From Anaeramoeba ignava BMAN (Eukaryota; Protista; Anaeramoebae): 64,000 nucleotides of DNA. The stretch is taken from contig JAPDFW010000033.1 of assembly GCA_028826165.1 (NCBI GenBank), positions 682,001 to 746,000 of the forward strand. Reading direction: 5' to 3'. Shown piece after piece: positions 43,835 through 63,250 of this stretch; position 1 is the first letter of the stretch; each line of letters begins with the position of its first letter. The notes under the pieces are model-generated. The model was given only the letters and a program-made list of their open reading frames with translations, was not told the origin of the DNA and did not search any database. The position numbers were made by a program, and so were the translations under genes.

Positions 43835-46800
43835 TTAATTCAAATTGATATTTTCTTGAATTGTTTTTCTTTTGAGTTCTTTTTTCTTGGTTTCCAAAAC
43901 TAAATCAATTATTGAATTTGGATTTAATTGAAAATAATCTTTTAAATCCTCAAGTTCATGAATAATTTTTTGATTAAGTTCTTTTGTTTCATCAAATTCA
44001 TCGTGATAAAGAAAATAGATTAATTGATTCAATGCTTGAAAAGATTTTCCACTTTGATCACGAACTTCTTTTGATTGGTCTTTGACATTCAAGAACATTC
44101 CTTTAAATAATCTGCTTCTTATGATTAAAATTAATTTATGAACTTTAATTGCATTTTGATTTTCATTTTGATTTTGATTTTCATCTTCAATTTGAATTTC
44201 ATTTTGATTTTCTTGACCAATTATTGTGAAATCCTTTGAATCATTTTCATCTTGGAATAAATGATGAAAATCTTGGAGTATTCCCTTTCTTCCCTTTTTG
44301 GTTTTAATCCAATTTGAGTCTAATCCAGTTTCTTCAAAGATAATTTCCATTCTCTCTTGTTTTTCAATTAAATCAAGAGCTTCCTCTTCTTTTTTGGTTT
44401 TTGAGATTGGATTTTTGAAAATGTATTTTTGTTGGTAAAATTTCTTAAAATCAAGAAATCCAGTGTATAGAAAATTCAAGGCAAATTGGACGTCTTCTTG
44501 AGGCTTTTCCTTGCAAATATCAATGAATTTTTGCAATTTTTTGCTCTTCGTTATTGAATCTTGTTAAAAGAATCATTTTGTGAGCTTGAAATTTGGAATC
44601 ATCTTTGGATTCAATTTCCAAATCGGAAAAAATATGAGATTTTAATAAACGATTCATATCTTGATTGATTGCATAAATTTGAGTGAACAAAGGAATGAAT
44701 TTCTCAATATTTGGATGATTTGAATCAAAAAGATTTGCATCATTCATCAAAAAAAAGTGGATCACTTCTTGATCATATCTTTTTTGGATCGAAAGTGAAA
44801 GAGGAGTTTCTTGTTTTGAATTTTTTGCGTGAATATTTGCGTTTTTGGAAAAAAGAAACTTGATCAACGGAAAAGGTTCTTTTTGTTGGCAAGCGAAATG
44901 CAATGGAGTTTCGTTTTTCTTGTTTTTTGAGTTGATACCGATTCCTTTATCAATGAGAAACTGCGCAATTTCGATTGAGTTGTATTGATTTTGACAAGCA
45001 AAATGCAAAGTTGTATCATTTTCCTTTGTTTTTGAGTTGACATCAGCTTTTTTCTCAATTAAATACTTGACGGAATCAAGTGTGTTGTATCGGCAAACAA
45101 AATGCAATGGCTGGATCTCATCGTTGTTTTGCGCTATTGGATCTGCGCCTTTTTCGATGAGAATTTTCATGGTTTCAAGTGAGTCCTGATGCTGTGAAGC
45201 AAAATGCAATGGTGTTGACTTGAGATTTGTTTTGGAATTAACATTTGCCTTTTTGGATACTAAAAATTTAACAACCTCAAGTGAATTTTCCTGTTGACAA
45301 GCAAAATGCAAAGGTTGGAATTTGTATTTATCTTTCGCATTGATTTCTGCTCCTTTTTCAATAAGAAATTTCACTACTTCAAGTGGATTTTGTTGTTGAC
45401 AGGCAAAATGAAGAGGTGTTTCTTGGTTTTTTTCTTTTGCGTTAACATTTGCCTTTTTGGATACTAAAAATTTAACAACCTCAAGTGAGTCCTGATGCTG
45501 TGAAGCAAAATGCAAAGGTGTTTGAGCGAGTTTTGTTTTGGGATTAACATTTGCCTTTTTGGATACTAAAAATTTAACAACTTCAAGTGAGTTTTGGTAT
45601 TGACAAGCAAAATGCAAAGGTGTTTCTTCTTCTTTTGTTTTGGCGTTAATGTCCGTCTTTTTGGAAACAAGAAACTCAATGATATCAAGTGCATCTTCCT
45701 GTTGGCAGGCAAAATGCAAAGGGGTTTCCAACTTGATATTTTTTGCATTCACATCAGCTCCTTTTGAAACGAGAAATTTGACAATTTCAAGTGAATTTTG
45801 AGGGTTTTGGCAAACAAAATGCAAAGGGGTATCCTGGTTCTTGTTTCTTGAGTTGATGTCTGCTTTTTTCTCAATAAAAAACTTGATCAATTCGAGCGGA
45901 TTCTGTTTTTGGCAAGCAAAATGTAATGGAGTTTCTTCTTCATTAGTTTTTGTGTTCATTTCCGCTCCCTTTTCAACAAGAAACTGAACAACATCAAACG
46001 AATATTGATATTTGCATGCATAATGAAACGGGGTTTCTTTTCTCTTGTTTTGGGCGTTAATGTCTGCTTTTTTCTTAATCAAAAATTTTATCACATCAAA
46101 CGAATTTTTTTGCTGATTTCGACAGGCAAAATGCAAAATGGATTCATCTTCATTTGTTTTTGCCTTCAAATCGGCTCCTTTTCCGATTAAGTATTTGATA
46201 ATCCCGAGCGAATTTTGATACTCACAAGCATAATGCAAAGGTGTTTTTGATTTCAACGCTTTTTCGTTGATTTCAAGTCCGTTTTGGACGAGAAATTTGA
46301 CAATTTGGATCGAGTTTTGCTGCTGATTTTGACAAGCAAAATGAAGTGCTGTTTCTTCGTTTTTTGTTTCTGCATTTAAATCGGCTCCTTTCTCAATGAG
46401 ATATTGAACAACCTCGAGGGAATTGCACTGGCAAGCGAAATGGAAGGGTTTTTTTTTCCAATAAGTTTCCGGATTGATTTGGAACTCTTTTTCAATGAAG
46501 AATTTAACAACATCAAGTGTGTTTTGATGACAAGCAAAATGGAGAGCTGTTTTCTCCAATTCTGCGCGTGCGTTGATGTCGTGCTTCTTGCGTATTAAAT
46601 ATTGGATCACTTCCAGGGTATTATTCTGGCACGCCAAATGGAACGGCGTTTCTTCATTTGTAGTTTTCTCATTGATATCAATTCCCTCTTTTACAACAAA
46701 TTTAATCACTTCAATCGAGTTTTTCTGGCACGCATAATGCAAGCATGTTTTGTTCTGTTTTGTTGCAATGCGGAGATCGCCTCCTTTTGAGACTAAATAC

Positions 46801-48455
46801 TCGATGATCTCCAGCGAATTTGTGTTGCATGCCAGATGCAATGGTGTTTCTCCGATTGAGTTCTTGTCATTTGGATCAAGTCCTTTTTCCGTTAATAATT
46901 TGATAATTTCAATCGAGTTTTTCTGTTTGCATGCATAATGCAGAAGTGTTTCTTCGCTGGTGTTCTTGGTCTTGATGTTTGCTCCTTTTTCCACAATTAA
47001 TTGAATCATTTCAAGTGAGTTTTTTTCGCATGCAAAATGAAGAGCGGTTTTTTCTTGGTCGGTTTTTGCATTTATATCGCCTGCGCTATTGATCAAAAAT
47101 TGGATCGGATCAAGTGTATTTTGGTGCATGCAAGCAATATGCAAAGGGGTTTGTTTGTGGTGATTTTTCACATTAATATCCGCTCCTCTCAAAACAAGAA
47201 ACTTGATCATATCAACCGATTCTTCGTTTTGACAAACAAAATGCAGCGCTGTTTGCCCGAATTTGTTCTGTGCATTCAAATCAATTCGTTTCTGAATAAG
47301 AAGCTGTATTGTCTCAAGCGAATTGTTGTTTTGGCATGCAAAATGAAGCGCTGTTTCCTCAAATTTGTTTTTTGCGTTCAAATCAGCTTCCTTTTCAATC
47401 AGAAACTGAATCACTTCAAGCGAGTTATTTTGGCACGCAAAATGCAAAGGTGTTTTGTTATATTTTGTTCTTGCATTGATTTCTGCTCCCTTTTCAATTA
47501 AAAATCTAATGATTTCAAGCGAATTGTTCCAACAAGCAAAATGCAGAGGTGTTTTTTTATCGCTTGTTTGCGAATTTATATCGAATCCTTTTTCAATTAA
47601 AAATTGGATCACCTCAATTGAATTATTCGCTTGACAAGCAAAATGCAACGCATCTTTGTTTGTCTTTGTTTTTGCGTTTAAATCAAGTCCTTTCTCAATC
47701 AAGAACTGAAGAACTTCGACCGAATTGCTTTGACAAGCAAAATGTAACGGTGTTTCTTCAAATTTGTTTTTTGCGTTTAAATCAAGCTCCTTTCCAATTA
47801 AAAACCTAATGATTTCAAGCGAATTGCTTTGGCAGGCATAATGCAGAGATGTCTGCTCATATTTATTTTTCTCACTCAAATCAAGTCCTTTTTCCATCAA
47901 AAATTGAATCACTTGAACCGAGTTATTTTGACAAGCAAAATGCAAATTAGTTTTATTCCACTTTGTTTTTGCATTTAAATCAAGTCCTTTTTCCATCAAA
48001 AACTGAATGGTTTCAAGTGTTTTGTATTGACAAGCAAAATGCAACGCTGTTTCATTATCAATTGTTTTTGCATGAATATCGGCTCCTTTTTCAATCAAAA
48101 ATTGAATGCAGTGATTTTTGTCTTCTGAATCCAAATAAATCATTGCATAATGAAGAGGTGTTTTGTTTTCTTGATCTTGGGCATTGATTTCAACACCGTT
48201 TTCAACTAAAATATTCATCACCTCAATTCCTATATTGTTCATAATTGCCACATGCATCGAATTTCTTTTTGATTTATCAACTGAATTTGGATTTGCTTTT
48301 TTTTTAATAAGAATTTGAATCATTTCTTTTGATACTTTTTTCTCAATTGCAAAATTTAAAATTGGCTTTCCGTTTTTTTTCATGTCTTTTTCCTTAATTT
48401 CCAATTTATTTAGAGACTCAATTTCATTTTTTTCAACAATTTGAAAAAGATCCAT
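43835..48455 (-). CDS. Giant ankyrin-repeat (>30 repeats) + BTB protein, frameshift near 44530
   Basis: 1311-aa ANK ORF ending in FSDLEI...AHKMILLTR. It continues in ORF 43835..44536 with FLYTG and a second BTB (VHKLILIIRSRLFKGMF). Confidence 0.9.
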
Positions 48456-52324: not shown

Positions 52325-55300
52325 ATGGTTGATTCAATTGGACCATATTTTCTTGGCGAAAGTTTAGGAGAAGGAAATTTTAGCAAAGTTAGACTTGGAA
52401 TCCACAAATCAACAAAAGAAAAAGTAGCGATCAAAATCATATCAAAACAATTATGTTTATTAGAAGAAACAACAAGAGAGCAAATACAAAAAGAAATATT
52501 CATTTTATGTTTATTGAAGAATCCAAATGTGTTGAGACTTTATGATGTTTATGAAACCGAAAAGGAATTGTTTCTTGTTATGGAATATGCTGATAAATCT
52601 GATCTATTTGTTCGTTTATCAGAAAAAAAAATGTTTACTCCAAATGAAGCTTTAAGATATTTTCAACAATTGATTTTCGGTTTGGAATACTGTCATGCTC
52701 ATCTTGTTGTTCATCGTGATTTGAAACTTGAAAATCTTCTTTTGAATCAAAAAGGTCAATTAAAAATTGGTGATTTTGGTATGGCTAGGCTTATGAAATC
52801 TAATTCTTTATTGGAGACTTCTTGTGGTTCTCCTCATTATGCTTCTCCTGAAGTTATTGAGGTATATCCCCCTTTTTTTATTGATTTTTTTTTTTTTGAT
52901 CTTTTTCTTAATTTTCCCATTTTCATTCACAGATCCAACTTAAAATCAATTAACTTTATAAATTAATTATAATTTTAAATATAATTCTAATTCTAATTCT
53001 AATTCTAATTCTAATTCTAATTTTAATTCTAATTCTAATTTTAATTCTAATTCTAATTCTAATTCTAATTCTAATTCTAATTTTAATTTTAATTTAATTC
53101 TAATTTTAATTCTAATTCTAATTCTAATTCTAATTCTAATTCTAATTCTAATTCTAATTTTAATTCTAATTCTAATTTTAATTTTAATTCTATTTTAATT
53201 TTAATTTTAATTTTAATTCTATTTTTAATTCTAATTATAATTTTAATTTTAATTCTAATTTTAATTTTAATTCTAATTTTAATTCTAATTTTAATTCTAA
53301 TTCTAATTTTAATTTTAATTAATTATTTAAAAAAAAGGGAAAAAGATATGATGGAACTAAATCAGATGTTTGGAGTTGTGGAGTAATTTTATTTACATTA
53401 TTAACAGGAAGACTACCATTTCATGATAACAATGTTGTACAACTTTTCAAAAAGGTTCGAACACGACAATTCATGCTTCCAAAAAATTTATCAAAAGATC
53501 AAGTTGATTTAATTTGTCGAATGTTGACAATAGATCCAGATCGAAGAATATCAATTCCAGAAATTAAACAGCATAAATGGTTCCGTTCTAATTTTCCAGA
53601 CAATTATGAACCACCTAATGTTATTATTAGAAAATCAATTGCAAATTATTATAGTTTATCAACTTCCAATATGGATCTTATTTCTAGTTTTAAAACACTT
53701 AATATTTCTCAAGCTAAAAATCTCCGAAAAATTCTTACTAATCCACAAATTACTCCAGATCATTCTTTGTTTCAAGAATTTCAAGAATTTCCAGAATTAC
53801 AAAATAGCAATTTATTTAGTAAAAATTTAGTGTCCAATTCTTTTATTTAATTTTAATTTTAATTTTATTTTTATTTTTATTAGTCGATGATTCAAGAAAT
53901 CAAGAATCTGTTGAACCACAAAAAAATGGTATTGAATTAGATGTAGATCAAGATAATGTTGCAAAAAAAGAAAATTCAAATGAAATCAAGCACGATGAAT
54001 GGGTTGAAATTGATTTTAATGAATTTCCAAGTAAATAACATTAATAAATATTTAAATATAAAATAAATATTAAATTCAAAATAATTAATCCAAAATAAAC
54101 ATCAAAATAAATATTTAATTCAAAATATATATTCAATTCAAAATAAATATTCAATTCAAAATAAATATTTAATTCAAAATAAATATTTAAATTTAAAATA
54201 AATATTTAATTCAAAAATAAATATTTAATCCAAAATTAATATTAAATTCAAAATAAATATTTAATTCAAAATAAATATTTAATCCAAAATAAATATTTAA
54301 TTCAAAATAAATATAAAAATAAATATTTAATCCAAAATAAATATTTAATTCAAAATAAATATTCAATTCAAAATAAATATAAAATAAATATTTAATTCAA
54401 AATAAATATAAAATAAATATTTAAACCAAAATAAATATTTAAATATAAAATAAATATTTAATTCAAAATAAATATTTAATTCAAAATAAATATTTAATCC
54501 AAAATAAATATTTAATCCAAAATAAATATTTAATACAAAATAAATATTTAATTCAAAATAAATATTCAATTCAAAATAAATATGAGTGATTTGAGGCTGA
54601 TGTGAAAAATTTTTTTTTGTTTATTTTTTTTCCCTTTTTTAATTAAAATTGAACAAGAAATCTCGATAAAAGCCTCAAATTTTGGTGCTTCCTGAGGCAC
54701 GATAAAGGTTTATTTCTTTGAGAATTAGAAAAATTGAATCAAAAAAAATCAATCAAAAATCAATCAAAAATCAATCAAAAAAAAAGAAAAATGAATTAGA
54801 TTCTTGTCAAAGAAAAAAGGAATAGAAAGAGTGATTATTTTTTCTTAATCTTCTCTTGTAAAAATCATCATTGTAAAAGTATCTTCTGTTCTAAAAGGAT
54901 TCACGGGAAATATATGAGCATCACTTATTCCAAAAAAATTTGAACTAGTTTCGGTTTCTAAGATTTCAGTCCAATAATGACCTTCATTGGCATTTCCAAT
55001 ATGGTGTATTGATCCAAGCAATTTCATTTCAGTTTCTTGATTAGGACAACTCTGAAACATGAAAGATTTGACATTGATCTTTTCTTCACATTGAATTTTG
55101 GTTCCAATTCTTGTTGTAGATTGAGTCAAGGAATCATAATAAGTTCTCTTGAAAAAAATAACCAAATATTTAGGAATAGTCAAAAGAGACAATTTAATGG
55201 ATCTTTCTACTTTTTGGTCACAATTTTCACAGTGATAATGTTGAGAGAAATCTAAATCCTTTTCAGCGAAATAATTATCGAGCATTGAAGAAATGCTAAT

Positions 55301-58300
55301 TTCTCCGTTCAAAATTGGAAAGCTAATCACAAGACTTGTTTCTTGAGGAAAGGAGTAAGTAAATCTTTTACATTTCTTACATGTCACTTTTTGCACAATA
55401 CGAATGCGGAAATCATTTATTATAGCTCGATTGTGAATATCAAATTCTTGATAAAGAAGATCATATGGAACATTGAAATCTGAAATATTCTCATTTGATA
55501 TTAAATCCATCAAGGAAACAAAAAATTCATGTATATCTTGTTCATTAGTGTTGGAAAATTGAGTCACATGCTCTCTTATTACCTTTCTTAGTGGAGTTAT
55601 ATTAATCGATTCTTCTGAAGATTGTAAAATATCGCTCAAAGTTTCAGAAATATCACCTAAACCTAATAGTTCAATTACAGAAGTTCTTAAAAGCACTTGA
55701 ATGATGGAAGCTATATAGCATGAATTGTGTGAATTTGGAATCTTTCTTAAATTCTAATCAAAAATTAAAATGAGAAAATCAAAAAGAAAAAAATAATAAA
55801 AGAAGAATTTTCTTACTCCTGTTTTGCAAATGGATATTGATGATGTAAAATTCTTTTGTTTTGGGAGATTATCTTGAAATTTTGAAATGCGCAAATTTTT
55901 GATTTCTTCTTTTTCTTCAAATTCAATTTTTCTCTTGATTTGTTGATGTTTTCTGGAAGAACTTCGTAGATTTCCATTCATATGATTCATTTCTTTCATC
56001 TTCTTTTCTCTTTGTGAATGAAATTTTTGTGTTTCATTTGGAATCACCTTTTCATTTTTGGAATTTGTCATTTGAGTATTAAAGAAAGGAATAGAATAAT
56101 TCTCCTGAATTAATGCTGAATTTTGTTTAATTCCAAATTCTTTCTCTTGAAAAATTTGTTCAATTATAGGTATTCTTCTTTTTCGAAAATTGGTGTTTGG
56201 CATTCTTGCAGTTTTCAAGTTTCCTTTTAAGAAAATAAAAATGTGTGATTTTTTAATTTTTGCAATTGGATTCTTGTAAAGAAATTTGAGTGCTCTATTC
56301 ACATTTAAAATAATTGGTGTTGTGTTACTAAGTTGAGATAAATAATCAAAAAGTGAATTAATAGTTGTAATATCCCCAAAATTTGCCTTATTCCTTGATA
56401 TGTTACCAAAATGACGATCAGACATATGTTTAGCATGATTTTTAAGAAAGAAAATTACCTTAATATCTAAAAATTGCGAACTAAAAGCATCAAAAATCAT
56501 CCCCAGAACAAAGTTATTTTTAATGTGTCCTCCATTATCAGAAAAAATCCTTAGTTTTGATATGTTTAATAGATTTCTTTTATGTTGCCATTCATGGAAT
56601 TTATATCGAAAATCTTGAAAACTTTGAAGAACAAATTGGGAATCCTATAAGAGAAATAGAAAATTAATAGAATCAAAAAGGAATTCAATTTTTAAACTTA
56701 CTTTAGTTTGATCCTCTGAAATATAATCGAAATAGAACAACTGTTTTTCAAACTGAATAGTAATATTGAAGATCACCCATGATTTTTTATGATAGAATTC
56801 TTGTGTTTCCCAATTATCTCGATACTCTTGAAAATTGACTGCAAAGTCCAAGAATAAAATAATTTGATCAAGAAGTTGAATTTCCGATTTGTATAAATTT
56901 CTCATTTCAAGAACTTTTCTTTGGTGATTCTGCCTTTTTTTCATGATTGGATTAGAACATTTTGGACACTGGAAAAAAAAAGCTGTTGCAGAATGAATTG
57001 AAAAATACTTTTGAAGAAGTGAGCAGAAAGTCCCATATTTAAGATCATTTCCTTTATCCTGTATTTGATTAAAAAGTCTTTTCTTTGTCAAACTTGTGCG
57101 GAAAACAGGTATATCTTTTCTGCTGTAAAAATCAATCGTTGTAAATGTTTCTAAATGATCTAAAATTCGAAGGATATTTTTTTCATGATTTGTGAAAACC
57201 CATTCTTTTGATTTTGTTTGAGATTTTAGGTAAAATGGAATCTTAAAACGATGATGTTCACAATTTAAATGTCTCTTTAGCTTCCATGAATTTAAATTTT
57301 TCAATTCCTTATCACAAGAAGAACAAAAAACTTTTTGTGTATCTAAATCATATGAAAGAAATGGATCCTGATCGATCATTTTTTGAGTATTCATTGGCAC
57401 TTTCTTTCCACTTTTTGAAATAGAGATTTGAACATTCAAAATAGGAATTTCCTCTGAAGTTATTAGAAGAACTTGTTCTTTAACACAATTTAGGAAGATT
57501 ACAAGTTGTGAATTGTTTGAAATACGAACAGTTTTATCTTGAAAGAGATAGGTGAATGCTTGAATCTTTTGTCGAATGTTGAAGTTATCTTTCACATCTT
57601 TAATTAAGGTTTTAAAGTTTAGGATCTTTTCAGCATCAAACACACAAAAATTTCCTTGAAAACGAATAAAAAAAAGCTTCATTTAAAAGAAAAAATGAAT
57701 TGAGATTTTATCAAAAAATTCCTTTTGAAATCCTCAAAAAAGTGGACATTGATTTAATTAAAAAAAAGAAAGAAAAGGAAAAAAATCTTCTTGATCTTAT
57801 TTCAAAAAAAAAAGAAAAAAACTAAAGAAAAAATTGATTCTTTAAACTATTTGAAGAAAAAAAGAAATTGAAAGGAAAAAGTGGACATTGATTTAATTAA
57901 AAAAAAGAAAGAAAAGGAAAAAAATCTTCTTGATCTTATTTCAAAAAAAAAGAAAAAAACTAAAGAAAAAATTGATTCTTCAATCAAAATACAAATGTCT
58001 AATATGTAAAGATATTTTGTAATTAAATTATCGATAAAAACAAATTGAAAGGGAGAAGAAAAGCAAAATGAAAAATCTGATCTTTTTGATTTTGATTGAT
58101 TAAAATATGATTCAAAAAAAGTTATTTTAAAAAAGAAGTCTAAAATTTCTCTTTTATTTTTTTAAGAGATTTAAAAAAGAAGACATATATGAAATTTAAA
58201 TTCCTTTTTTAAAAAAATTCCTTTATTAATAAAATCAAAAGTAAATAAATTTGATGAGAATTTTTTGGAACAATATAAAAAAAATCACTCAATAAATTGA

Positions 58301-59047
58301 TTATTTGATATTTTAATTTTGAGGCTCAAGAGGCTTTTTTTTTTATTGATTTTTTTTGCAACAGAATCACTCATATTTAATTCAAAATAAATATTTAAAT
58401 TTAAATTAAAATTCAAAATAAATATTTAATCCAAAATTAATATTTAATTCAAAATAAATATAAAAATAAATATTTAATCCAAAATTAATATTTAATTCAA
58501 ATTAAATATTTAAATTCAAAATAAATATTAAATTCAAAATAAATATTTAATTCAAAATAAATATTTAAATTTAAATTCAATTTAAAATTCAATTTAAATT
58601 TAATAAAAAATAGTCCAAGAAAATCATAAATCAAAACCAATCGAAATTATACAGAAAGTAAAAAAACAACCCAAAAAAATCAAACCAGAAAGAGAAAAGA
58701 AAAAAAGATTAGTAGATTGGTTCGGAAAAACAATAGAAGAAAAAAATGAAAGGAAAAAAAGAAAAAAACCAACTATTATTCCACTTATTGTTTTTCAATC
58801 ACAAAAAAATTTACTTCTTTTTACAAAAGATTTACAATCTTTTTTTAAAAAAAAGAAAATTAGTTGGAAATATCCAAATCTTTATAACTTACAAGTTGCA
58901 AAAAAAGGTTTAGAATTCAAAATTTTATTAACTGAATTATTTAATGATCCAAATTCAAATCGAATTAAAATTAAAATTATTTATAAAAAAGGTTCAGAAA
59001 AATATTTTAAAAACATTGGAAATCAAATTTTAAAAAAAATTAAATGA
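52325..59047 (+). CDS. AMPK-related (BRSK/SNF1-like) Ser/Thr kinase with a probable KA1-type C-terminus. Exons 52325-52861, 53338-53818, 53884-54030, 58614-59047
   Basis: LGEGNFSKV, VAIK, HRDLKLENLL, IGDFGMA, LETSCGSPHYASPEV^GKRYDG.KSDVWSCG. The spliced frame stays open across intron 54031-58613 to TGA at 59045-59047. Confidence 0.88.
54845..57682 (-). CDS. Sola-like transposase fused to a ubiquitin-specific protease (USP/C19), ~905 aa. Exons 57682-56702, 56644-55817, 55753-54845
   Basis: Introns GTAAGT..TAG (56701-56645) and GTAAGA..TAG (55816-55754), both phase 0. Transposase motifs FLDFAVNF, IFSDNGGHIKN, HAKHMSDRHFG. USP motifs PNSHNSCYIASIIQVL, EQDIHEF, PKYLVIFFKR, HHIG...GHYW, ISD. Confidence 0.82.
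57736..57981. repeat. ~105-bp direct repeat (period ~139 bp) upstream of the transposase ATG
   Basis: AGTGGACATTGATTTAATT...AAATTGATTCTT begins at 57741 and at 57880. Confidence 0.9.
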
Positions 59048-59250: not shown

Positions 59251-61328
59251 ATGAAAAAAATAGCAAAATTTTTTAAAGATCAAGGAAATCTTGCATTTGC
59301 AACAAAAGATGTAGAAAGAAGTATTATAAAAGGAACCAATAGAGATAAAGTAGCGCCAAAAGAAAAGCATGTATTATTAATACTTCGCGAAGTGAAAAAA
59401 ATGGATGCAGAATATGATTTTATGCTTAAAATTTTAACTGGAAGATTAACAAAGAAAAATTATATAATTGTTTTTAAATCACTTATTTTTCTTCATCGAC
59501 TCATGATTGAAGGAGATCGAAGATTTATGAGAGAATTCTCCCTAAAACAACAAAATGCGGGCTTTTTTGGTCTTTCGAGATTCAAGGATCTTTCTTCTCC
59601 TGATTCTTTTGACTATTGTGAATTTATTCGAAATTATTCTTCTTATCTTGAGGAAAAACAAATCAATTTCAGAGAAATTTCCTTCAGTTTGGATTATGAT
59701 TTGGAAACTATTTCTGCTAAATCTCCTTATCGCAAATGTGAAATTGCTAGAGTTTTAAAAGAAATTCCAAGTTTTCAGAGCCAACTTGATTTAGTTTTTC
59801 TTTGTGATGTAAAAAAAATTATTTTTAATTTAAATTAAAAAATTTTTATTTTTAATTTTTAATTTTTAAATTTAAATAGCCAAGTACTAAGAATACAAGT
59901 CCCATTTTTGCTGCTGCTTTAGCTTTATTAATTCGTGATTCGACAAGATTATTTAAAACTATTTATGAAGGAATTTCAAATATTCTTGGTATTTTTAATT
60001 TTATAAATTATTTTTAATTTTATAAATGAATTTTTAATTTTTAAATTTTATTTAATAAAATAAAATAAAAGATGTTTATTTCAAATTAAATGAAAATAAA
60101 GCAAAAAAAGCACTAGAAATGACTAAAAAATTTAAAGAACAAGTTGAAAAATTATCAGATTTCTCAAATAAATGTGGATCACCAATTATTGAAGGAGAAG
60201 ATGATTTAAAATCAATTACAAACTCACTAAAAAGATTAATTAAATCATTAAGCGCTCAAATCAATAATGGAGAATTTATTGAAGAAGATATTCCCATTCA
60301 AACTTTAAATTTATCAGATAAAGATGATGATGAAGATGAAAAAGAAAGTGATGATGATGATGATGAAAGTAAAAGTAAAGAAAGTGATGATGGTGAAAGT
60401 GATAGTGGTGAAAGTGATAGTGATGAAAGTGATAGTGATGAACCAAAAAAATCGAAAAAACCAACAAAAAAAAACATAATTGAATTTAGTCCAAGATGTA
60501 AAAATTTTCAAAAACAAGAAAATTAAAAAAAAAATAAAAAAAATTTCCCAAAACATGAAAAGTTGAAAAATTAACATAAATTTTTAATTTCATGTTTTAT
60601 AAAATTTTCAAAATAGCCAAAAACAAAAAGGTTTCTTTAACTGTAACTCCAAAAAAACAACAACAACAACAAGCACAAAAAATAGAAGAATCCATTATTG
60701 ATATTCAACCTCAAAGAAAAAATATTCAAAAATCAAACGATGAATTTGACTTCCTCAAAGAGATTGACCAAAAACAACCACCAACAACAACAAAATCAAA
60801 TAATTTTGGAATTGATTCATTTTTTGATTCATTACCAAATTCAAATATGAACACACCTCCCAAAACAAATCAAAGAATTTTTGATAATGGATTTGGACAA
60901 ACACAAAATGATCCATTTTCTACAAATGGATTTGATAATTTCAATTCATTTTCAACACAACAAAATCAGTTTTCGAATTTTAACACAACATTTTCATGGG
61001 ATAATACATCATTCAATTCAAATCAAAATCAAAATCAAAATCAAAATCAAAATCAAAATCAAAATCAAATTCAAAATCAAAATCAAAATTGGAATTGGAA
61101 TAATTCAATTCAAAATCAAAATCAAAATCAAAATCAAATTCAAAATTCAAAATTCAAAATCAAAATCAAATTCAATTCAATCAATCAGCAAAAAATATTG
61201 GAAATAAAATTTTCCAAAATTCACATTTATCTCCAAAAAATTGGCAAAATCAACAAAGAACTATTCAAAACAGACAAGAAAAGAAAAAAGATGATTTTAG
61301 TGATTTAATTGATTTTTCTTTAATTTAA
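59251..61328 (+). CDS. ANTH-domain clathrin adaptor (AP180/PICALM-like), ~4 exons, probable frameshifts near the 3' end
   Basis: IIKGT..D..APKEKHV, IVFKSLI.LHRLM.EG, FIRNYS.YLEEK. The disordered tail has DPF and DLIDF motifs. Confidence 0.85.
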
Positions 61329-61492: not shown

Positions 61493-63250
61493 ATGAATGA
61501 AATTTTATTTTTTGGTTTCAATAATAACCCAATTCTTATTAAAAATAAACCAAATAAAATAACAAAACCAATTCAATTTAAATTTAAATTTGAAAATGAA
61601 AATGAAAATGAAAATGAAAAACAAATTAAACAAATTTCATCAGATTATTTTGGAATAATTTTCCTTTTTAAAAATGGAAAAGCAATAAAATATCCAAATA
61701 ATTCAAAACAAAAACCTCAAAAAATCCAAATTGAAAATATTCAAAAAGTAACTGTTAGATCGGGAAATGAAACTATTTTAACAATAGAAGGAAATGTATT
61801 TAGAAAAGATTATTCAAATCCAAAAAATCCAAATGAATTTATCAATATTTCATCATTAATTGAAGATACAAATGATAGAATAATTCAAGATGTTGTTTCT
61901 GGAGATAGTACAGTTTACTTATTAACTTCAAATCAAAATGTTTATGGAATTGGTTCAAATTATTATGGTCAACTTGGTTTAAAAAAACCTAAAAACATAA
62001 AAAAACCAATTTTAATGATGAAAAATATTTCTAAAATATTTACAGGAAATTCTACTTATCATGTTTTTCTTTTAAATTCAAATCAAGAATTATTTTGTTG
62101 CGGTAAAAATAATCATGGACAACTTGGATTAGGTCATCACAAAAAAAAAATAATTTCATTAACCAAAATTCAAAATATTCCAAAAGGCAAAATAATTGAT
62201 ATTCAAACAGAAGATGATTATTCAATAATGTTGATTGAAGAAGAAGATGAAAATCCAAAAAGAAAACTTTATTCATGTGGAAATTATCGATATAATGGAC
62301 TTGGCAAAGATGAAAATACTTATGAATTTACTGAAATTAAATCATCTTTATTTGAAAATGATGATAATATTCTTGAAATTTCTTGTGCATATCATCATAC
62401 TTTGATTTTAACATCCAAAGGAAAACTGATTTCATTTGGAAGAAACGATTATGGTGAATTAGGAACTGGAGATACAATAAATCAATATATTCCAATTCAA
62501 ATTGAACTTCCTAAATTAAGATTTAATGAAGATATTTTCAATTATCATGTTCATTGTGGATATAACAAATCATTTCTTTATTATTCTCCTTCTCTTTCTT
62601 CTTTTTCCAATCTTGAAGAAGATTTGATAAAACTATTTGAAAGAAAAGAATTTTGTAATATTTCATTTAAAACAGAAAATGGAGAAATAATTGAAGCTCA
62701 TAAATTAATATTGAAATATAGATTAAATCAAAATCAAAATCAAATTGAAAAACTTCAAGAAATTATTTCAAATAAATCAATTAAAGAATCAAATCAAATA
62801 TTTGAAATGATTTATTCAAACAGAATAATAAATCCAAAATTATATTCTGAAATTAAAGAAATTATAAATTCAAATGAAAAAATAGAAGAAACAATGAAAA
62901 GAATTTATTTAAATGAAAATGAAAATGAAAATGATTTTATAATTGAAAGAAAAGAAAAACAATATAAATTTCCAAAATTAATATTAATAATGAGAAGTGA
63001 ATTATATCGAGGAATGTTTTTATCTGTAACTGAAGATAAATCAAATAAAGTTACAGATTATAGTGAATTAAGTAATAAATCATTTCAAATATTTGAATAT
63101 TGGATTTATTCAAATCAAATTAAAGAAGGAATTCAAATTACACAAGAAATGATTGATGAAATTAAAATTGGAATTGATTATTTTCAATTAAATCAAACAA
63201 ATCCAAATTTATTTGATTTATTAATTAACAAATTTAATAATCAAAATTAA
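61493..63250 (+). CDS. RCC1-repeat + BTB protein, copy 4
   Basis: Close paralog of the 36540-42207 cluster. Confidence 0.9.
   Translation: MNEILFFGFNNNPILIKNKPNKITKPIQFKFKFENENENENEKQIKQISSDYFGIIFLFKNGKAIKYPNNSKQKPQKIQIENIQKVTVRSGNETILTIEGNVFRKDYSNPKNPNEFINISSLIEDTNDRIIQDVVSGDSTVYLLTSNQNVYGIGSNYYGQLGLKKPKNIKKPILMMKNISKIFTGNSTYHVFLLNSNQELFCCGKNNHGQLGLGHHKKKIISLTKIQNIPKGKIIDIQTEDDYSIMLIEEEDENPKRKLYSCGNYRYNGLGKDENTYEFTEIKSSLFENDDNILEISCAYHHTLILTSKGKLISFGRNDYGELGTGDTINQYIPIQIELPKLRFNEDIFNYHVHCGYNKSFLYYSPSLSSFSNLEEDLIKLFERKEFCNISFKTENGEIIEAHKLILKYRLNQNQNQIEKLQEIISNKSIKESNQIFEMIYSNRIINPKLYSEIKEIINSNEKIEETMKRIYLNENENENDFIIERKEKQYKFPKLILIMRSELYRGMFLSVTEDKSNKVTDYSELSNKSFQIFEYWIYSNQIKEGIQITQEMIDEIKIGIDYFQLNQTNPNLFDLLINKFNNQN

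Follow-up and report, generated by a model that had tools for sequence, protein, structure and literature searches.

A stretch of 64,000 nucleotides from Anaeramoeba ignava BMAN (contig JAPDFW010000033.1, positions 682,001 to 746,000 of the forward strand; the window, with positions counted from its first letter) carries a complete Sola2-type DNA transposon of 3,789 bp, whose single gene is predicted to encode a DDD transposase fused to a deubiquitinase of the USP (C19) class. An earlier note, made from the letters of this DNA, had proposed that three minus-strand open reading frames join into a protein of about 905 residues once introns of 57 and 63 nt are removed. This structure holds: the three exons (327 codons, 276 codons, and 302 codons plus the stop) are free of stops, meet in phase 0 and total 905 aa. 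The reading favored here is that an autonomous Sola2 element expresses one spliced gene, and that the fused USP protects its own transposase or transpososome from the host. The probability of this whole chain is put at about 0.5.

The features of the gene are given below. The window element and its copies are termed family A; B, C40, C26, C142 and C67 denote related A. ignava elements.

56702..57682, minus strand: exon 1 (aa 1-327), with a possible PB1/ubiquitin-like N-terminus, a BED finger, a CxxC...H motif and catalytic Asp 1
57422..57682, minus strand: N-terminal domain (aa 1-87), PB1/beta-grasp-like, a weak lead only
57254..57349, minus strand: BED-type zinc finger (aa 112-143); PF02892 at 22.2 bits (cut-off 20.6), with Cys and His residues that do not vary across five families
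56846..56848, minus strand: transposase catalytic Asp 1 (D279), invariant among 101 relatives
56645..56701, minus strand: intron 1, 57 nt, phase 0; missing in the C142 transposase, site common to families B (68 nt), C40 and C26
55817..56644, minus strand: exon 2 (aa 328-603), the remaining DDD core and then a Lys/Glu/Asn-rich linker
56537..56539, minus strand: transposase catalytic Asp 2 (D363), invariant
56417..56419, minus strand: third catalytic Asp of the transposase (D403), unchanged across six A. ignava families and kept in at least 90% of relatives
55754..55816, minus strand: intron 2 (63 nt, phase 0), between linker and USP; missing in C40, site common to family B (76 nt) and C26
54845..55753, minus strand: exon 3 (aa 604-905), USP/C19 deubiquitinase domain (PF00443, E 5e-26)
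55718..55720, minus strand: USP catalytic Cys (C615); Asn at -5 kept, the usual Gly at -3 replaced by His in family A
54977..54979, minus strand: USP catalytic His (H862), invariant in four families
54920..54925, minus strand: Ser880-Asp881, the third and fourth critical USP residues; the other families have Asp-Asp or Asn-Asp

The five catalytic codons that the earlier note had singled out (D279, D363, D403, C615 and H862) all lie where it placed them. Both introns start with GTAAG, finish with TAG and are poorer in G+C (19% in intron 1, 16% in intron 2) than the exons (∼27%). Since both lengths are multiples of three, the window copy taken alone is indistinguishable from a frame interrupted by two in-frame TAG stops, and the two TAG codons could in principle be nonsense mutations or read-through stops instead of intron ends. 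The relatives speak otherwise. Family B has both introns at identical sites, where their lengths of 68 and 76 nt break the frame and can be bridged by splicing only; read-through was rejected on this ground. The two segments also lack a counterpart in the intronless relatives and disrupt the Sola2 motif spacing; excising intron 1 from the window copy recovers the exact spacing YxDxxSxxxxxDSxFV over the junction. Intron 1 is absent from C142, and intron 2 from C40, in which a single frame of 570 codons runs from the latter half of the transposase through the entire USP, while C26 carries both introns at the sites found in the window copy. The GenBank models KAJ5069443.1 (a family A copy) and KAJ5069497.1 (a family B copy) use the intron 2 junction of the window copy, though as gene predictions they are no independent proof. 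The interpretation of the TAG codons as genuine stops is thus largely refuted and has become barely credible.

The placement of transposase and USP in one polypeptide is therefore seen at the DNA level in C40, and for the window copy it would follow from conservation of the introns. An incomplete removal of these introns could nevertheless change the outcome. If intron 2 were mostly retained, its in-frame TAG would end a stand-alone transposase and the fusion would be only a minor isoform under regulation. Were intron 1 retained, the product would similarly be a DNA-binding fragment that lacks the catalytic core, reminiscent of a P-element repressor. Regulated splicing is known in P elements, and two in-frame introns that each end in a stop would yield clean shorter proteins. 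The families differ in the lengths and frames of their introns, however, and the fusion must be constitutive in C40, where intron 2 is lacking. The fusion is also present in three GenBank models of A. ignava, predictions though they are. Regulated retention of intron 2 is consequently held to be a slim possibility, confined to family A. As the earlier note had remarked, exon 3 has no ATG ahead of its Cys box: the first Met is residue 82, past the catalytic Cys, so that no whole USP could be made from exon 3 alone. Removal of both introns is strongly supported by these indirect lines, and the predicted protein then reads, from its N-terminus, as a possible PB1-like domain, BED finger, CxxC motif, DDD core, low-complexity linker of ∼110 residues and USP. 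Domain searches were made with the exons singly, and GenBank proteins of sister elements served in place of the joined sequence.

The middle region is strongly supported, by homology and a structural model, as a Sola2 DDD transposase with a predicted RNase H fold. Searched with a profile built from the A. ignava cores, 1.84 billion proteins gave 769 matches at E ≤ 0.001. The relatives inspected were the best 150 of these, many of them short contig fragments. Among them, P0141 (E 1.1e-9) was identified by reading as the Sola2_PPa-1 protein published by Bao and Jurka in 2013 (PMC3627910). Against a profile of 75 relatives, exons 1 and 2 of the window copy reached 97.6% and 98.2% (HHalign), respectively. 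Since the core of the window copy spans an intron, the fold was modelled on the C40 core, giving an RNase H fold with a pLDDT of 89.5 and Z scores of 13.0 (Metnase) and 12.9 (Mos1); retroviral integrases are matched as well (Z 12-13). An attempt with two sequences gave a pLDDT of 43 and was useless. Scans of viral and metagenome contigs returned no relative of the transposase. The Sola-like DDD transposase and the RNase H fold proposed in the earlier note are thereby borne out, the former by recovery of a Sola2 protein with the family profile and by the three conserved Asp residues, the latter in the model of the C40 relative.

The ends of the element agree with this assignment. Terminal inverted repeats of Sola2 elements start with GAG or GRG; those of the window element are perfect 8-bp repeats beginning GAG, and family B ends in GAGAGA. 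A 4-bp, AT-rich (AWWT) target-site duplication is part of the Sola2 definition (PMC3627910). The element is filed as Sola2 because its homology, its 4-bp AT-rich duplication and its short GAG ends all fit.

The N-terminal 87 residues are possibly PB1- or ubiquitin-like across all families. Three weak signals agree on this, none of them significant: a profile search of the PDB placed MEKK3 first (E 0.12, the aligned stretch being read as its PB1 domain), Atlas returned clusters of PB1 and of further beta-grasp domains (0.83-0.84), and single members searched against Pfam matched PB1 (E 0.13) and the Crinkler N-terminal domain (E 5e-4). The first 185 codons (57128-57682, minus strand) differ from the remaining gene in having 10 amino-acid-changing and 1 silent difference across the six family A copies, for which relaxed and diversifying selection are both candidates.

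The C-terminal part was correctly recognized by the earlier note as a full USP domain reached through two introns. Exon 3 matches PF00443 with 92.2 bits (E 5e-26, cut-off 23.9) over profile positions 4-239 of 254, and a profile of the A. ignava transposon USPs finds USP8 first among solved structures (E 1.7e-39), followed by USP15, USP2 and USP21. The oxyanion Asn five residues ahead of C615 is present. USPs occur in four families (A, B, C40 and C26) with mutual identities of 22-40%, and all four keep the catalytic Cys and His, the final Asp and the zinc-ribbon cysteines. An apparent extra intron in the C26 USP proved to be a one-base shift within an A run. Ser in place of the usual residue before the final Asp, which the earlier note considered compatible with activity, is found likewise in active USP16, USP30 and USP45 (PMC10867860). 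Within family A, the USP frame is intact in all six copies, whose USP exons differ by 8 amino-acid-changing and 10 silent changes. The resulting ratio of amino-acid-changing to silent polymorphism per site (pN/pS) is 0.21 (one-sided p 0.0014), each change being counted once against the window copy and not on a tree, which shows purifying selection on the predicted enzyme among recent copies. The USP is probably enzymatically active, and selection has probably maintained it from a time before the four families diverged.

Complete ends define the element as a mobile unit.

54584..58372, minus strand: complete Sola2-type DNA transposon, 3,789 bp (family A); both ends common to copies on four other contigs and one end to a fifth, with unrelated flanks
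54580..54583, no strand: left target-site duplication, ATAT; ATAT flanks each of the complete copies, 5 in family A and 5 in family B
58373..58376, no strand: right target-site duplication, ATAT, pairing with the left one
54584..54591, plus strand: terminal inverted repeat, 8 bp, GAGTGATT, at the 3' end of the gene strand; perfect repeat
58365..58372, minus strand: terminal inverted repeat, 8 bp, GAGTGATT, at the 5' end of the gene strand; perfect repeat

Family A comprises six copies in A. ignava, situated on six contigs with unrelated flanks and 98-99.6% identical, five of them with both ends and one cut at its 5' end. Family B comprises five copies (C90, C96, C48, C93 and C105) of 3.4-3.5 kb that are 98-99.7% alike, with their own termini, an ATAT duplication and the same transposase-USP fusion. 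All ten complete copies of the two families sit between ATAT duplications in almost G+C-free sequence, and removing the window element together with one ATAT recreates the surrounding 18-bp minisatellite. Such likeness between copies at unrelated sites speaks for recent movement, not for current activity. Very probably, then, the element is a Sola2 transposon that has moved recently and targets ATAT, mostly within AATATT, in repeats almost free of G+C. The exons of the window copy and of the C1 copy are free of indels; other family A copies have small ones, many in homopolymer runs, which may represent decay or residual nanopore error.

Two further observations concern the ends and the upstream region of the element. 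The 8-bp terminal motif recurs as an extra inward-facing copy near each end (54829-54836 and 58283-58290); together with the two termini these are the only four occurrences in the window, and the extra copies are possible binding sites of the transposase. Upstream of the start codon, at 57737-57980, lies a tandem duplication of ∼105 bp with a period of 138 bp, and the C80 copy is 138 bp shorter here.

From these parts a mode of action can be proposed. Judging from its family and its insertion sites, the transposase would bind the ends, excise the element and insert it at ATAT in AT-rich repeats. The USP, tethered in cis by the flexible linker, would remove ubiquitin from its own transposase or from the transpososome and so counter ubiquitin-dependent degradation or extraction by the host, allowing more transposition. 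Self-deubiquitination is favored because the covalent fusion places the transposase nearest to the enzyme, and the same mode of action has been proposed for the VTD deubiquitinases of Helitrons (PMC9741609). More tentative is a wider role in which the USP is a working part of the transposition cycle that reverses ubiquitin control by the host, perhaps aided by the ubiquitin-like N-terminus and switched by splicing of intron 2. If true, it would provide the first demonstration of a USP-class deubiquitinase that promotes cut-and-paste transposition.

The fusion could also be active on other substrates. Nearby host proteins at excision and insertion sites, such as ubiquitinated histones or repair and silencing factors, might be deubiquitinated, with the transposase acting as the targeting module; the BED finger and DDD core would carry the USP to DNA. 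Proteases of transposons have been proposed to act in repair (Bao et al.; PMC2836005). The closest solved relatives of the USP include USP21 and yeast Ubp8. Both of these are histone deubiquitinases, but the USP resembles them no more closely than as members of one family, which is no guide to substrates. Action on host substrates is the main rival and is held to be considerably less likely than self-protection.

Protection of the transposase by a catalytic USP must also be weighed against the view that the USP plays no part in transposition, either as captured cargo or, for family A, as a ubiquitin-binding module that is decaying or non-catalytic. Several findings count against the protective role. 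C142 and C67, from the same genome, lack a USP, as does every outside relative examined, which indicates that the USP is dispensable for Sola2 transposition. The USP diverges faster (22-40% identity) than the transposase core (33-46%), and two neighbors of the active site are unusual in family A: a His replaces the Gly close to the Cys, and the final Asp is preceded by Ser. Polymorphism in family B gives no signal of selection, the excess of amino-acid changes there being due to one decayed copy. The tree of USPs, moreover, includes four outgroups only. Cargo would account for the USP-less relatives and for the departure of family A from the active-site consensus, and an intron exactly at the domain boundary resembles the mark of a captured exon. 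Yet Cys, His and Asp have been retained through four families despite their low identity, recent copies are under purifying selection, and the USP frame is intact in every family A copy. A passive or non-catalytic module agrees poorly with this conservation and is judged improbable.

The history of the fusion can be followed in part. In the tree of USPs, the four transposon USPs form one group (96/91) apart from the four outgroups, and in the tree of transposases the four USP-bearing families cluster with the USP-less C67 (91/86); families A and B are sisters in both. This pattern is compatible with a single old capture of the USP, though it is no proof of one. Among the best 150 of the 769 transposase matches, many of which are short contig fragments, a USP was found only on the three A. 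ignava fusion proteins. Word-based searches for homologs retrieved nothing beyond the C40 protein and two USPs of ordinary eukaryote type. Giant-virus USP clusters came nearest to the transposon USP in Atlas features. A viral origin found no support in the family profile or the tree: two giant-virus USPs scored 70-73 bits on the family profile, against 98-109 for two of cellular type, and fell outside the transposon group.

Several relatives in A. ignava are of interest in themselves. C142 (L072 4-3507, minus strand) is an intronless Sola2 transposase of 1,168 aa that has extended tracts of Gln/Asn and, at the C-terminus where the USP would be, a zinc knuckle; no clear termini were found in the DNA examined, and it is possibly domesticated. 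C61 (L073 1522-2538, minus strand) holds a frame whose first part resembles, by eye, a transposase of Harbinger type and which continues into part of a Sola2 exon 1; a nested insertion is a possible cause. On C73, a span of 6 kb contains rearranged relics, namely two transposase fragments that resemble family A at ∼66% and one USP fragment resembling that of family B. KAJ5079105.1, a further A. ignava relative, is labelled merely as a ubiquitin hydrolase in GenBank. Labels of host ubiquitin hydrolases inflate the USP count of A. ignava and hide the transposase.

The element lies antisense, probably within an intron of a host gene.

54031..58613, plus strand: probable intron of an SNF1/BRSK-like kinase gene that holds the element antisense, largely 18-bp AT-rich minisatellite; GT..AG, matching phase 1, with a Met-free frame of 143 codons downstream

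Within the kinase gene (52325-59047, plus strand), the insertion would have lengthened this minisatellite-filled intron from ∼790 to 4,583 nt. A KA1 domain in the last kinase exon was not confirmed by Pfam. The neighboring genes encode a protein of ∼30 ankyrin repeats (44520-48455, minus strand), an ANTH/ENTH-domain protein (59251-59838, plus strand) and an RCC1-BTB protein (61493-63250, plus strand).

Among known systems, the nearest to the transposase are the dictyostelid Sola2 elements DFa-2 of Dictyostelium fasciculatum and PPa-1 of Polysphondylium pallidum (PMC3627910). The order of transposase motifs is common to both and the A. ignava element, as are a 4-bp AT-rich duplication and short terminal inverted repeats; DFa-2 likewise begins with GAG, and the catalytic Asp residues are spaced 87/43 in DFa-2 and 84/40 in A. 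ignava. The dictyostelid elements measure 10-15 kb, have terminal inverted repeats of 12-22 bp and carry a separate Fanzor1 gene (PMC3627910), whereas the A. ignava element is 3.8 kb long, with 8-bp repeats, a BED finger and a USP at the C-terminus of the same protein. On the side of the protease, the catalytic domains of USP8, USP15, USP2 and USP21 share with the A. ignava USP the Cys box, the QxD box, the four-Cys zinc ribbon and the His box. The A. ignava USP differs from them in being only ∼300 aa long, without regulatory domains, and fast-evolving; its Ser-Asp pair in family A is that of USP16, USP30 and USP45.

The novelty that the earlier note had suggested for the fusion is more limited. 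No report of Sola with a USP was found in the literature searched, which left Repbase Reports and most subscription journals outside, nor in the outside proteins searched, and the pairing of Sola2 with a USP seems undescribed. Fusion of a transposase to a USP is not unprecedented, since an IS5-like Transposase_11 with a Peptidase C19 domain has been noted in Trichomonas vaginalis (XP_001314237.1; PMC2836005). That protein, compared here by its description, likewise joins a C19/USP hydrolase to a DNA transposase, also in a metamonad, but it belongs to another transposase superfamily and was remarked upon as a single protein. Other transposons have acquired related activities: Ginger1 carries OTU or Ulp1, Mutator Ulp1, and Helitrons OTU and VTD (PMC2836005, PMC9741609). 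Here too a transposition protein bears a cysteine protease of ubiquitin or SUMO type, which in Ginger1 lies C-terminally and often comes with introns, although the protease classes and transposon superfamilies are other than USP and Sola2. The idea that such enzymes spare transposition proteins from proteasomal loss, or act on repair factors, has already been published (PMC2836005, PMC9741609). Repeated uptake of OTU, Ulp1, VTD and C19 by unrelated transposons suggests a general and hardly tested control of transposition by host ubiquitin. To these cases the A. ignava element adds an independent and compact one: it measures 3.8 kb, has a single gene and defined ends, and is represented by a copy with intact frames and by four divergent families. 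Standard probes exist for USP enzymes, and its natural USP-less relatives offer controls in a system suited to testing why transposons carry deubiquitinases.

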